DNA of 64,000 bases, taken from contig CDRNVI010000060.1 of NCBI GenBank assembly GCA_977017575.1, positions 310,001-374,000 on the forward strand, read 5' to 3'. The notes beneath the pieces were generated by a model. The model did no database searches. It saw only the letters and a program-made list of their open reading frames with translations, and was not told the origin of the DNA. Below, one piece after another: positions 43,871-48,944 of the stretch; positions within the stretch are counted from its first letter, which is position 1, and every line of letters starts with the position of its first letter. Source of the stretch: Paramoeba atlantica. Its lineage: Eukaryota > Protista > Discosea. A program made the position numbers and the translations under genes.

Positions 43871-44424
43871 ACGCAGGCGCAGAACTTATGTTGCGTTGGA
43901 TGGGCCACGCACACTAAGAAATCCTATATAAAATTGACATTGTCAAGAGATTTGACCAGTTGGGGTATAGCAACCACGAAAACATTCGTGGGGCTGTCGG
44001 TGAGGACCAAGACGAGATCACGCGACATCACGTGAGATCATGCGAGAACTCTCTGTTAGAGCAATTTCGCCCAAAAGGGCTAAGAAAAAAATACTTAATT
44101 TTTCGTTGATTTCTTTTCTTGGTTTTTTTGGACCAGACCAGACGTTTTTTTGATCAGACATGCCCCCTACCTCTAATGGTAAGACCCCCGAAAAACGTCT
44201 GAAATATGGGGGGAATCGGGTGTTTGGGTTACTGTGACCCCCCCCTTTATTATGGACACTTTTTCAGTTTTTGTCCATAATAAAGGGTAGGGGGGTGATG
44301 AAAAGGGTGCGATTTTTTATTTATTTAATGTCGGTGTGGTAGGTGCATCGTAAAAAAGCGGTAGTTGTTGGTAAACCGGCTTCGCAAATAGATTCCCACT
44401 AACGACGCCGCGTATGGCTGAAAA

Positions 44425-44497
44425 TATATCCGCCCGGAGTCGAACCTACGACCACCAAATTATGAACGGCAGGTCTTACCAAAAGGACTACCTGGGT
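44425..44497 (-). pseudogene. tRNA-Met(CAT)-like degenerate sequence with an intact Pol III B box
   Basis: acccaggTAGTCcttttggtaaGAC...TTCATAA tttgg TGGTC gtaGGTTCGACTCC has tRNA arm spacing, but the acceptor and anticodon stems pair poorly. Confidence 0.55.
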
Positions 44498-45113
44498 TCG
44501 AGTCCCGCGACCTACGTTTTTAAGCACCGTGATTTGTGCCCAAATCGAGGATAGAGGGGAGGGGCTGGACCCCCTTTTCTCACCCTGCTGGATCCACCCT
44601 ACCCCGGACACCATAAAAAAGGGAGAGTCAGAGGTTGTAAACAACCCACGCAATTTATTTTATTTTGAAATAAGTGTGCGCGCACACTTATTATTCCGGA
44701 AACACACTTACTGTGACCCCCCCCCTTTAATAGAGACCCCCCCTCATCCCCCCTTTAATAGAGACAAAAGTTTGGGGAAATTTGTTTGGGGGGGATTTTT
44801 TTTGGTGAAAGCCGAGAAGAAAAATTGGAATGTTGCTTAAAATGGGGGGAAAAATACTTCGAATTCACTGAATCAATAATCTCTACCAATGCTACCATCC
44901 ACCGCATCCCTGGATTCTCCTGTGAAATTGAAAGATGGTATCCCCAACACAGTTCGTTCTGTGCGTGGTCCTCTAAGGTCCTGGATTATTACAGAACCTC
45001 CAGCGCCACGAATCGGGTATCCGGCATTCGAAATAACAAATAATCCTCTTCAAATCACTGTCCGTGAAAAGAGAGACCAAGTAGAGTTAAGTATGTACGA
45101 CAAGCGCAATATA

Positions 45114-46663
45114 CAGGGGGGTCACGAAAAAGGTGGGGGGTCTAAAATTTGTACCGTGCGAGCTTTTGACCTAATTCCTTCGGCATTCAACAGATCTCGA
45201 AATTTTAAGACTACTGGCACCATTGTTGCCGCCCCTGAAGCTGATATGACGTCATGATAAAATTTTAATGAATTTTTTATCTGAAAATTCTGCAAAAAAT
45301 CGGATTTTTATCATTTTTTATCATTTTAGCCCATTAATCTATGAATAAAATACCACTTAACTCTTTCTAACACATCTCTTATGCCGAAAACACTTCGCCG
45401 CCAGAGACGCACCCTCTCGACGCAACAAATCACTTATGAAACACGTGTAATTTGCGTCCATGAGGTACAAAACCAGGGACGTTCGATTACAGACACTGCT
45501 GCTCTTATGAAATGCAGTGAAGCAACTGTCTCTCGATGGGTTAAACGCCACCGGGAGACAGGAGGGTAGAACGTATAAAATACATACGTAAGAATGCGAT
45601 TGATAATGAAGAGTTTCGAATAATGTTGGAATCTATTGTAGATGAAGAAAATCAACGTAGTCCCATTGGCTGTCCATCTTGGAGGTGGGTTCACCGCCAG
45701 ATCGATCAAACCAAGTACCCATGCTCTCTTTCGTCTGTGAAAAGATCACTGAAAAGGAGCGGGTACATAAGCAGAAAAATGAGGAAAGTTCCTCATCTCA
45801 CGCCTCAGCACAAATTCGACCGCCTGGAGTTGGCAAATCGTTTGGAGAGGTTCACCCCCTTTCAATACGCCCGTATTCTGTGGACGGATGAAAAGATTTT
45901 TAAATGCGGGTACCACTCACGCAATATTTGGTACATTTGCAAAAGGTCAGATGAACCCCTTGAGGTACCAAAAGATGTTGAGAAATATTTCGGAGGAAAG
46001 GGGGTTCATATTTGGATGGCGGTGAGCCTTGAATGGGGGATTCCCAAGGTTCACTGTTTTCATGAGTTTGCGGAGAATGAGACGGTCACTAATGAAACGT
46101 TTCTCTCTGCCATGACAAAACGAAATGGTTTCTACAACTGGTTAAAGCGTAAACCAGCGGCAACAGTGATCATGGATAACGCTCCGGGCCATAATCACGC
46201 TCGCCGCGTCGGCAGAGACATGGGTATCAGCATTCCTGATTGGCCTGCCAAGTCGCCGGATTTAAATTTAATTGAAAATTTGTGGAGCATGACGGATCAC
46301 CACATAAAATTTACTCTCCGCCCCACAAACCGTAAGGAACTACAAGCAGCAATTCCGAAAGCGCTTGATTATCTATTATCTGATATGAAAGCATCGTATA
46401 CTAATACTTCCCGTCCCGAATCAGACTTCTTCGAGAAAAAAACGGGGGATCAATAACGAAATAATGAGAAAATCTAAATATGCAAAAAACAAAAAAGCCT
46501 GTTTTTTGCCGACTCACCATTATCACTCAACCTTATATGCCTAAGTAGTTATAACTCACATAGTCTTAAAATTTCGAGATCTGTTGAATGCCGAAGGAAT
46601 TAGGTCAAAAGCTCGCACGGTACAAATTTTAGACCCCCCACTCTTTTCGTGACCCCCCCCCTG
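45114..46663 (+). mobile_element. Tc1-like DNA transposon, 1550 bp, ~100-bp TIRs, TA TSD
   Basis: TIRs 45114-45213 and 46561-46663 are nearly identical inverted copies; TA at 45112-13 and 46664-65. Confidence 0.95.
45381..46464 (+). CDS. Tc1-family transposase, DD32E, with two -1 frameshifts (361 aa reconstructed)
   Basis: N-terminal HTH (SEATVSRWVKRHRETG), ILWTDEK, IMDNAPGH, DWPAKSPDLNLIENLW; the shifted frame gives the Tc1-like tail FPSRIRLLREKNGGSITK. Confidence 0.88.
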
Positions 46664-48375
46664 TATGCCTGTCGAAATCACCGGTATCCAAGATACAGAG
46701 TAAGTACGGCCTCTCTCGAATTGCCTTGTACAAAATACGCAACCGGGGTGCGAAACATTATCAACATTTGATCAATCGTTCTATGGGCGGAAGCTGTAGA
46801 AATCGATGTTTTAATGCAAGAGGGGGGGATTATAATGACGCGGAGGCCATACTGTACAGTAAAGCAGCTGCTATGGAACGCGTACATCGAGCGTGCGAGC
46901 AAGCTTGCTCCCTCTCGTCCCCTCTTACGCTTTAAATGCAGACAATGTCAATGACTTTAACTCAAATCTTGACAAGGAGTGGAAGAAGTTCCGCGCTCCG
47001 AAGAGGTGCCTTACAACTCATGCCTTAGACTACCCATGTGAAAATGTATTATCGATATATCACAAATTGCCGAATGTGGACACTCACATGATGTTTTTAA
47101 ACACGGGAAAAACGCGATTGATGTTGGGTTTGGGACGTAAACCAACTCAACATATAACTTCTGTCCGCCGCATTATAGCAGTGATTATATTCAACGGCCA
47201 TTTCATTCTTGTGCATTACCACAAATTGGGAATGACCGTATTTGACAATTACCAGGCATTTTCTCCCACTTCCCGCCAGGACTACTTGGAAAGCTTGGCT
47301 TCTCACTTAAGGCCTATTATCGGCACCTCTGCAAGCAACGTAAAAGTAAAATATGCGAAAGTTCAGCAGCAATAACCTCTAATGAATGAATGTGGATTAC
47401 ATGTTGTGAATAACCTGTGTTCGCTGTTATTCCCTAACGGCGTACAGAACAGACTCACTAGGAAGAACATTGCGAAGACTTGGTATCCAAGTGTTTTAGG
47501 GATCCCGTCACCTTTACCTGTACAACAGAGTAGCGACATAAAGGAAGGGAACAACAGTGAGGATGATGAAAACTTGGAGACAGTCGTCCAACTCATCAAA
47601 GACACTGATATAGGAGATGAGACGACAGAGGGATGGGAAGAAAGCATAGTATACCCTATTAACATTGATATATAACTTTGATCTGTAAGGCATATCCTTG
47701 ATCTGTAAAGGTGGGATGTATTTCATCGAGCTGACATTGTTTGTGCTTTCATTTTCTAGTAGTTTATCTTGCGCTTTCATTTTCTCGTTCACTTTGCGCT
47801 AGTAGCAGTCTTTCATGCGCAGAAACATGAGTAGAAAATCTGCTCCAACGATAAATATACCGTTTTTGTAAAACAGGTTTACTACTTTGAGTAGTTGTAA
47901 ACGGACCCTCATATGTGCGTATTTAAGTCCTGAAAAAAAAGGCGCCGCGAAACTTTTTTCGTGCTTCGCATTCTCATTTCACCCCCCCCCTTAATAGAGA
48001 CAAACCACGAAATTTTGTCTACATTAAAGGGGGGGTCACAGTATTATTCCGGAAACACCTATTATTCCGGAAAATGTGGACGAAAAAATCCGGAATAATA
48101 AGTGTGCGGGGGGTTTAGTCCGGGCAGGGTCGAAACAGTACCAGATTTAGATCGTTCGCCTAGTGATACAGATACTAGCGAATCGGAGGTGAGCATATGA
48201 ATCAAATGATTCCTGATAGTTTAACCTTTTTCGTTTGATGTATTCATGGTTTATTTATATTTGAAGACGATTTGCTTCAGTTGTGTAAAAAACGCGTGGT
48301 CTAGACTGCCACAAAAAGTGATCGATAGGACGGTGTTAAGTTTTGACGCTCGTCATAAGAAGTCTACACTATCGT

Positions 48376-48944
48376 TCAGCTATGAGTCCCCCCCCCTTTA
48401 TTTTTGGGTCGCTCGTCCGTTTGACCTAATTCCAGCGGCAAACGAGAGATCTCGATCCCTAGCCTATCTTTGCCGGTCTTCGTTTTTTGTAAGAACTTAA
48501 CACACACTTTTGGCACTAATGCGGTGCTTCCATCACTTTCGTCTCTAAAAAATATAAAGTGGATAAAAAAACGGTACGAAAATGGGTAACAATGCACGAT
48601 GAAAAAAAGAAATGTTCAGAGTACTTAAAACGCATGAACAAGGTGTTGAAGAGCGGGGGTGGAATATTGGATATTAAGCTTGTCTTTGTGTAATCTACTT
48701 TTCCTGCAGTGATTGTATTTAACGGGTTTTACACGGTAAATACAACAAAAATTGGAACATTTTTGTAAAAGTAGCATTTGTTCGGCTCATTTTAAAAAAA
48801 AAAATAATTCGATCCTAATGAGTCGAGAAAAAACAGTTTAAACGGCGGGAAACGCACCTATGTAAAATTCTCTACACGTTCAAAAAAAAGATGATAAAAA
48901 ATAGACCAGTTTTTCAAAATTCGAGGGGGGGGACTTATAGCTGA
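48376..48944. mobile_element. Non-autonomous element with ~20-bp TIRs, related to the Tc1 TIR
   Basis: tcagctat(g/a)agtccccccc inverted at both ends; internal tttgacctaattcc...agatctcga resembles the 45165-45200 TIR segment. Confidence 0.6.

Follow-up and report, generated by a model that had tools for sequence, protein, structure and literature searches.

A helix-turn-helix and Ulp1-like protease "gene" in Paramoeba atlantica is very probably a decayed internal-deletion derivative of a pogo-like transposon

Introduction

Internal-deletion derivatives of DNA transposons, among them Ds from Ac and the deleted copies of P, Tc1/mariner and pogo elements, usually originate through interrupted gap repair. 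Here we analyse a nest of transposable elements (TEs) in a 64,000-nucleotide stretch of the Paramoeba atlantica genome (assembly GCA_977017575.1, contig CDRNVI010000060.1, positions 310,001 to 374,000; hereafter the window), in which one TA-flanked element carries a region resembling a helix-turn-helix (HTH) followed by a Ulp1-like protease domain. Transposon-fused or transposon-borne Ulp1 domains have been described for Ginger1 and for Mutator-like elements (MULEs), including Kaonashi (PMC2836005), and the reference list of the same paper includes ULP-carrying MULEs of Arabidopsis and melon. Our literature search found no paper pairing pogo/DDE_1 with Ulp1.

An initial annotation of the locus had taken the two recognisable parts for a single transposon-borne gene for a DNA-tethered deSUMOylase. 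We propose instead that the element is, with little doubt, dead and non-autonomous, having arisen by internal deletion from a pogo-like transposon of about 2.9 kb, the intact open reading frame (ORF) of which (721-771 amino acids) encodes a putative HTH, a DDE_1 core and a C-terminal Ulp1/SENP-like protease. The finding itself is ordinary transposon decay, yet it makes a clean worked example, and the set of deletion derivatives described below shows that an apparent two-domain "gene" can be a deletion artefact. The parent family is more interesting, since its pogo-type transposase ends in a Ulp1/SENP-like protease that is too divergent for Pfam, and the family gains fold-level support as well as remote homologues in public data (P0005, P0028).

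Materials and Methods

The window lies on contig C60. The assembly totals 45.7 Mb, and many of its contigs occur as near-identical pairs; the sister contig at this locus is C51. The nest was mapped by direct reading of the region and by a repeat scan. Coordinates without a locus prefix are those of the window, and all features are on the + strand except where another strand is given or where, as for a target-site duplication, strand does not apply. Relatives were sought in six-frame genome searches with the N-terminal ORF and the C-terminal piece of the element, and the loci were fetched from the genome for comparison. The intact relatives compared were those at loci L084 and L086, and a full-length copy on contig C63 was left out. 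Deletion derivatives were delimited by tblastn of the 721-aa protein from L084 against the fetched loci, and their frame status was judged from the flanking matches.

Results and Discussion

Colinearity with intact pogo-like genes

The outer element extends from 44711 to 48041, is bounded in the repeat scan by TA-CTGTGACCCCCCC and GGGGGGGTCACAG-TA, and has short terminal inverted repeats (TIRs) and a TA duplication. It is 3,331 bp long, or 1,779 bp after subtraction of an inserted Tc1-like transposon (45114-46663) and one TA, in line with the TA-flanked element of about 1.8 kb first described here. Its coding remnant is broken into four pieces. Piece 1 (44889-45113), delimited from the ORF list, the ORF on C51 and the alignment, corresponds to residues 1-75 of the relic transposase and covers the N-terminal region to ...SMYDKRNI. 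Piece 2 (46666-46928) follows the Tc1-like insertion with residues 76-163, which include the putative HTH (...VSKIQSKYGLSRIALYKIRNRG...) and a conserved RNR-FN-RGGDY block, and runs to ...SSPLT. Piece 3 (46934-47372, frame 0) begins with a linker and then covers the Ulp1/C48-like domain for the first two thirds of its length, including His at 47199-47201, Asp at 47244-47246 and Gln-Gln at 47367-47372. After a TAA nonsense codon (47373-47375), piece 4 (47376-47675) encodes the rest of the domain, including the catalytic Cys at 47391-47393 (NECGLH), and an acidic C-terminal tail ending at the natural stop (47673-47675). The His, Asp, Gln-Gln and Cys codons therefore stand in the order in which they had initially been read, and the TAA is in frame with them.

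Genome searches with the N-terminal and C-terminal queries returned dozens of matches each, and on several contigs the two matches shared a single long open frame, with about 1 kb between them. Two intact ORFs were compared, one of 721 aa on contig C4 (L084:1120-3282) and one of 771 aa on the minus strand of contig C26 (L086:814-3126). The initial annotation had suggested looking for uninterrupted copies that also encode a DDE domain, and the 771-aa ORF is such a copy: it matches Pfam DDE_1 (PF03184, pogo/Tigger-type) at 29.1 bits, above the cut-off of 22, with an E-value of 8.9e-7. A remote homologue in public data, P0005 (784 aa), also matches DDE_1 (E 3.8e-5). The window pieces align to residues 1-147 and 494-715 of the 721-aa protein (alignment A3; tblastn coordinates), leaving about 346 residues (approximately 148-493), the whole DDE_1 core, with no counterpart in the window copy. 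DDE_1 was absent from the window copy's own ORF by Pfam, alignment and tblastn, in accordance with the earlier statement that the element has no transposase domain. Since DDE_1 is found only in the relatives, the window element is pogo-like solely as a deleted derivative. In Pfam, neither the four window pieces nor the intact 721-aa relative, searched whole and in thirds, matched C48, DDE or HTH, and phmmer of the 721-aa protein against PDB gave no match.

Full-length elements are about 2.93 kb long and have TA-CTGTGACCCCCCCCTTTAATA termini and a second, subterminal motif copy, as in the window; the terminus was found in the full-length relatives at L084 and L086 and in the window element. In the window, the 5' TIR and the subterminal copy of the CCCCCCC-TTTAATAGAGAC motif of about 19 nt occupy 44711-44771 (repeats 44718-44743 and 44746-44771), and at the other end a subterminal motif copy and the 3' TIR occupy 47982-48041 (direct repeat 47982-48007); the motif copies are candidate transposase-binding sites. 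Because the family's terminal and subterminal repeats were kept, the element would have been movable only by the transposase of a full-length relative, and the initial annotation had likewise proposed that it relies on a transposase in trans.

The motif itself, a C-run followed by TTTAATA..., is present in two copies at each element end (44718-44771 and 47982-48035 in the window; 911-960 and 3779-3833 in L084). Its last 6-7 bases vary by subfamily (AGAGAC, TGGACA, TGCAC), and the variants are candidate subfamily-specific transposase-binding sites.

The deletion junction and the nonsense codon

Somewhere from 46893 to 46935 the reading frame of the element moves by -1, from frame 1 to frame 0. 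The initial annotation had recorded a -1 shift near 46920; the frame change is real, but its cause is a deletion junction at 46929-46933, the two sides of which are out of frame. Copies on C9 and C4 (85-90% DNA identity) match the window up to 46928 and then encode ...PLT-KTIVMDMIRE..., the start of the missing region. Copies on C79 and C56 (79% DNA identity) match from about 46933, and the sequence upstream of that point encodes residues 338-458 of the DDE core (tblastn). Since homology ends at 46928 on one side and starts at about 46933 on the other, the junction falls within 46929-46933, a placement obtained from DNA homology breakpoints, protein alignment and tblastn coordinates.

The TAA at 47373-47375 lies between the Gln-Gln and the catalytic Cys, six codons upstream of the latter. 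At this site a coding codon stands in other copies: GAA (Glu) in C53 and C87 of the same subfamily (...VQQQEPLMNECG...) and a Gln codon in the C4 type. If the frame break and the stop were inside introns, a spliced mRNA could still encode an intact HTH-Ulp1 protein, and GT and AG dinucleotides do occur near 46882-46941. However, the GT...AG candidate checked by hand (46882-46941) is 60 nt long and leaves the frame unchanged, and the intact relatives code continuously through both positions (...PLT-RNIVID...; ...QQ-Q/E-P...). Because the relatives read through with a coding codon at the TAA site, the stop must have replaced such a codon, and we reject the intron explanation as scarcely credible.

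The sister contig C51 serves as a natural control for these observations. It carries the outer element, 96-98% identical, in the same miniature inverted-repeat transposable element (MITE) and in the same TA. The Tc1-like element is missing there, and the empty site reads ...GCAATA-TA-TGCC.... This Tc1-free copy proves the Tc1 insertion and its TA duplication. The joined N-terminal ORF on C51 (L032:1680-2174, 164 aa) has an ATG start, reads ...SMYDKRNICLSKSPVSK... and stops just after the junction, so that the in-frame fusion predicted from removing the Tc1-like element in silico exists in the genome. The frame break and the TAA stop are both common to C51 and the window copy, and both lesions must therefore predate the Tc1 insertion.

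Independent deletions in other copies

At least five other copies of the family have differing internal deletions. In terms of the 721-aa protein (tblastn), they join residues 1-122 to 482-721 (C11), 1-285 to 507-721 (C4/C40), 1-183 to 589-721 (C7), 1-498 to 675-721 (C1/C30/C44) and 1-179 to 630-700 (C60/C51, at a locus other than that of the window element). Five of the six derivatives, the window's included, are out of frame, which is the expectation for random deletion and argues against a selected HTH-protease product. The junction of the window element was seen at one locus only, on its two haplotypes.

These data bear directly on the dedicated gene of the initial annotation, i.e., a DNA-tethered deSUMOylase in which HTH and Ulp1 parts form one protein, perhaps by a programmed -1 frameshift, and which would help to counter silencing, the transposase itself being provided in trans. 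Such a gene would account for the presence of both HTH and C48-like parts and for the His, Asp, Gln and Cys codons that are still readable, the shift it needs is indeed -1, and ULP1-like genes on transposase-less transposons (Kaonashi MULEs) are cited in PMC2836005. However, in every intact family ORF a DDE_1 core of about 350 aa separates the two parts, and the frame break coincides with the homology breakpoint at which relatives run into that core. Further, the TAA separates the active-site Gln from the Cys on both haplotypes, the junction lesion being on C51 as well, and on C60 the ORF is also disrupted by the Tc1-like element. The element is present at one locus only, and elsewhere the two halves are joined only in decayed derivatives that arose independently, with other junctions and mostly out of frame. 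We therefore consider a dedicated gene very improbable, and as far as can be judged from the sequence, an HTH-protease protein would not be expected from the window element.

Among public predicted proteins, P0002 (317 aa) is a deletion derivative of a C4-type element that consists of the N-terminal region and the protease tail.

A second possibility concerns the N-terminal remnant by itself. KP is a repressor of P elements, and by analogy the 164-aa HTH-only ORF, intact on C51, might be made and compete with the family transposase for DNA. The ORF on C51 is open and has an ATG, the N-terminal region is predicted to be the best conserved DNA-binding part of the family, and two subterminal motif copies are kept at each element end. 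On the other hand, the window copy is interrupted by the Tc1-like element, and an open remnant of 164 aa is a chance expectation in a young deletion derivative, so that we hold this possibility to be unlikely by a wide margin. More generally, derivatives in which the DNA-binding head is kept, whether or not the protease tail is kept too, could be trans-acting regulators of the family, either as site-competing repressors, of which the C51 ORF would be an example, or, if read through, as helpers delivering the protease; such a role seems to us very unlikely.

The C-terminal Ulp1/SENP-like domain

The initial annotation had called the C-terminal part Ulp1/C48-like from the order of its catalytic residues, and structural and profile evidence agrees. 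The motifs NGHF, VFD(S/N)Y, QQ and NECG, in the order His, Asp, Gln, Cys, are conserved in the family and in remote homologues, and alignment A8 conserves H(F/Y)xL, xDS, QQ and N(D/E)C(G/A). An AlphaFold2 (AF2) model of the domain from the intact C53 copy (L085:2435-2959), which is 93% identical to the window's protease domain, was built from the 27-sequence alignment A8 with homologues and reached a predicted local distance difference test score (pLDDT) of 92.2 and a predicted template modelling score (pTM) of 0.90. Foldseek with this model gave 53 matches in PDB (E<=1e-3) with Ulp1, Ulp2, SENP1/2/5/7, NEDP1 and XopD at the top, with E-values down to 2e-6, probability 1.00 and template modelling (TM) scores of 0.5-0.68. 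In ESM Atlas features, 27 of the 30 nearest clusters were Peptidase_C48 (top score 0.96). A profile search of 1.84 billion representatives gave 32 matches at E<=1e-3, 12 of which have Pfam C48; for P0014, P0023 and P0028, which were inspected one by one, C48 lies on the matched stretch. Taken together, the model, the profile search and the language-model features agree that the C-terminal part is a divergent Ulp1/SENP-type (C48, clan CE) domain.

A further independent line points the same way: a profile from four sequences had a single PDB match, yeast Ulp2 (5LNB), aligned at QQ...C with an E-value of only 0.07. A word-index protein search with the C-terminal region found no match, and a six-frame PF02902 scan of the genome found ten places, none of them in this family. 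Pfam and structure checks had been proposed for the joined protein, for which natural uninterrupted copies (C51, C53, C4 and C26) stood in. The window pieces, searched apart, had no C48 or HTH match, and structure prediction on the intact C53 copy returned the Ulp1/SENP fold. A first AF2 model from four sequences (pLDDT 52.7), the Foldseek matches of which were all below significance though mostly to clan CE proteases, was superseded by the 27-sequence model.

The profile hits include proteins that combine DDE_1 with a C48-like domain, namely P0028 and, by motif, P0005, while P0023 joins an IS1595-type DDE to a C48 domain. In P0016 and P0020 the protease-like stretch is inside reverse-transcriptase proteins, P0020 also having a UCH domain. 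The architectures of P0002, P0016, P0020 and P0023 indicate that the protease module travels with several transposon classes.

The N-terminal region

For the HTH, the matches are weak. Among five family members, HTH_23 was matched in four (best E 0.0007), CENP-B_N in three (best 0.001) and HTH_28 in three, all below threshold, and the window-type sequence gave an HTH match with an E-value of only 0.2, over ...VSKIQSKYGLSRSALYKIRNRG. The ESM Atlas neighbours of the region were all of CENP-B_N, HTH_Tnp_Tc5, BrkDBD or psq type, with scores of 0.81-0.86, which is lead level, and the N-terminal profile had only chance-level matches in PDB. The pogo/CENP-B-type HTH of the initial annotation is thus upheld at a sub-threshold level only. 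The position upstream of the DDE_1 core fits and favours a putative pogo-type DNA-binding head as the best reading of the N-terminal part from its sequence.

Proposed history of the element

In the history that we propose, a deletion, via interrupted gap repair, would have taken out the whole DDE core, bringing the HTH region up against the protease domain in a different frame, and a nonsense mutation would later have hit the protease domain upstream of the catalytic Cys. The derivative would have landed in a TA inside a small MITE before the divergence of the haplotypes (sister contigs), because C51 has the site, the junction and the stop in common with C60. A young Tc1-like element would then have entered the TA in codon 75/76 of the C60 copy only. 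Past mobilisation by a relative's transposase is likewise suggested by the retained ends.

Several points weigh against this interpretation. A full-length element of the window's own subfamily (at least 85% DNA identity) was not found in the assembly, and the intact relatives share 55-57% protein identity with the window subfamily, so that the parent is inferred and not observed; the same missing parent leaves gap repair as an inferred mechanism. Pfam PF02902 (Peptidase_C48) had no direct match above the gathering score in either the window pieces or the intact relatives, the connection to that model running only through the remote profile hits, and the HTH assignment is based on sub-threshold matches only. 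Nevertheless, we give the deletion-derivative interpretation a very high probability.

Comparison with known systems

Like other internal-deletion derivatives, the window element has the TIRs, subterminal repeats and TA duplication of its relatives, an interior that follows the transposase gene in order except for one missing block, and a family with many independent breakpoints. It differs in that an autonomous copy of the parent subfamily is not in the assembly, and in that the relic juxtaposes two recognisable domains and mimics a two-domain gene. The full-length relatives resemble the pogo/Tigger group of the Tc1/mariner superfamily in their TA duplication, short TIRs, DDE_1 domain and an N-terminus with weak CENP-B_N/HTH_23 matches, whereas the family's transposase ends in a Ulp1/C48-like domain, for which our literature search found no description in pogo, and the window copy is without the DDE core.

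With regard to the Ulp1/SENP proteases (MEROPS C48, clan CE), the fold matches Ulp1/SENP/NEDP1 and His, Asp, Gln-Gln and Cys occur in order. However, the family is too divergent for PF02902, its substrate class could be SUMO, NEDD8 or ubiquitin, and the window's domain is cut by a stop. The placement of the Ulp1-like domain C-terminal to the transposase recalls Ginger1 (PMC2836005). In contrast to a Kaonashi-type ULP cargo gene, the window element has no open ULP-like ORF (frame break and TAA on both haplotypes), and its architecture comes from deletion of a fused transposase gene.

Architecture of the nest

Excision of the outer element and one TA in silico restores a MITE of 95 bp with perfect 20-nt TIRs (44681-44700 and 48089-48108) and an interior of three regular tandem units of about 20 bp each, just as the initial annotation had described a regular array. 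The left part of the MITE (44681-44710), comprising the TIR and tandem units, ends in the target TA of the outer element (44709-44710), and the right part, together with the TA duplicate (48042-48043), occupies 48042-48108 (repeat scan). The right half of the MITE is repeated at at least five further sites in the genome.

The nest had been described as four layers deep, and three of these, the Tc1-like element, the outer element and the MITE, stand. A fourth layer was not confirmed in the genome repeat comparison, in which the two flanks of the MITE belong to different repeat families and no single enclosing element was demonstrated. The surroundings are TE-dense. The left flank (44326-44654) is a repeat of about 330 bp with at least 40 genome copies at 85-92% identity, and it holds tRNA-like strings (GGTTCGAGTCCCG and an opposite-strand relative) around 44420-44510. 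It looks like a short interspersed element (SINE)-like retroposon by sequence, but ARAGORN called no tRNA in the window. On the right, another short repeat (...GAGTCCCCCCCCCTTTA...) begins at 48365-48450, with at least 15 genome copies at 88-97% identity, and this repeat has the C-run and TTTA terminal signature in common with the pogo-like family.

The two haplotypes differ at the right end of the nest. In a comparison of C51 (L032:3230-3404 / L002:2830-4336) with 48037-48450 of the window, the two sequences part when two bases of the 3' TIR of the outer element are still to come (...GGGGGGGTCAC, then TCAATACATG...), and the right half of the MITE and the next 400 bp of the window have no match on C51. 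From the sequence, the difference would be either another insertion or a deletion.

The Tc1-like element (45114-46663) has TIRs of 98 nt with 98% complementarity, and the TA on either side (45112-45113 and 46664-46665) is its target-site duplication. In Pfam, its ORFs match HTH_23/HTH_28 at 45381-45569 and HTH_Tnp_Tc3_2 and DDE_3 at 45623-46456. With at least 12 full-length genome copies at 95-98% identity, the Tc1-like family is young and abundant. The transposase of the window's element is split into a 62-aa HTH ORF and a 277-aa DDE_3 ORF that lie in different frames and are separated by stops (45567-45622), which may reflect either a short intron or a family-wide frameshift.

A copy of the window subfamily on contig C32 (L083:3605-4219, minus strand; 91-96% identical) breaks off after ...RDRVELS, which lies seven codons upstream of the Tc1 site in the window. 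There the inserted element differs from the window's Tc1-like element and has its own Tc1-type HTH ORF, which makes it an independent insertion at nearly the same place.

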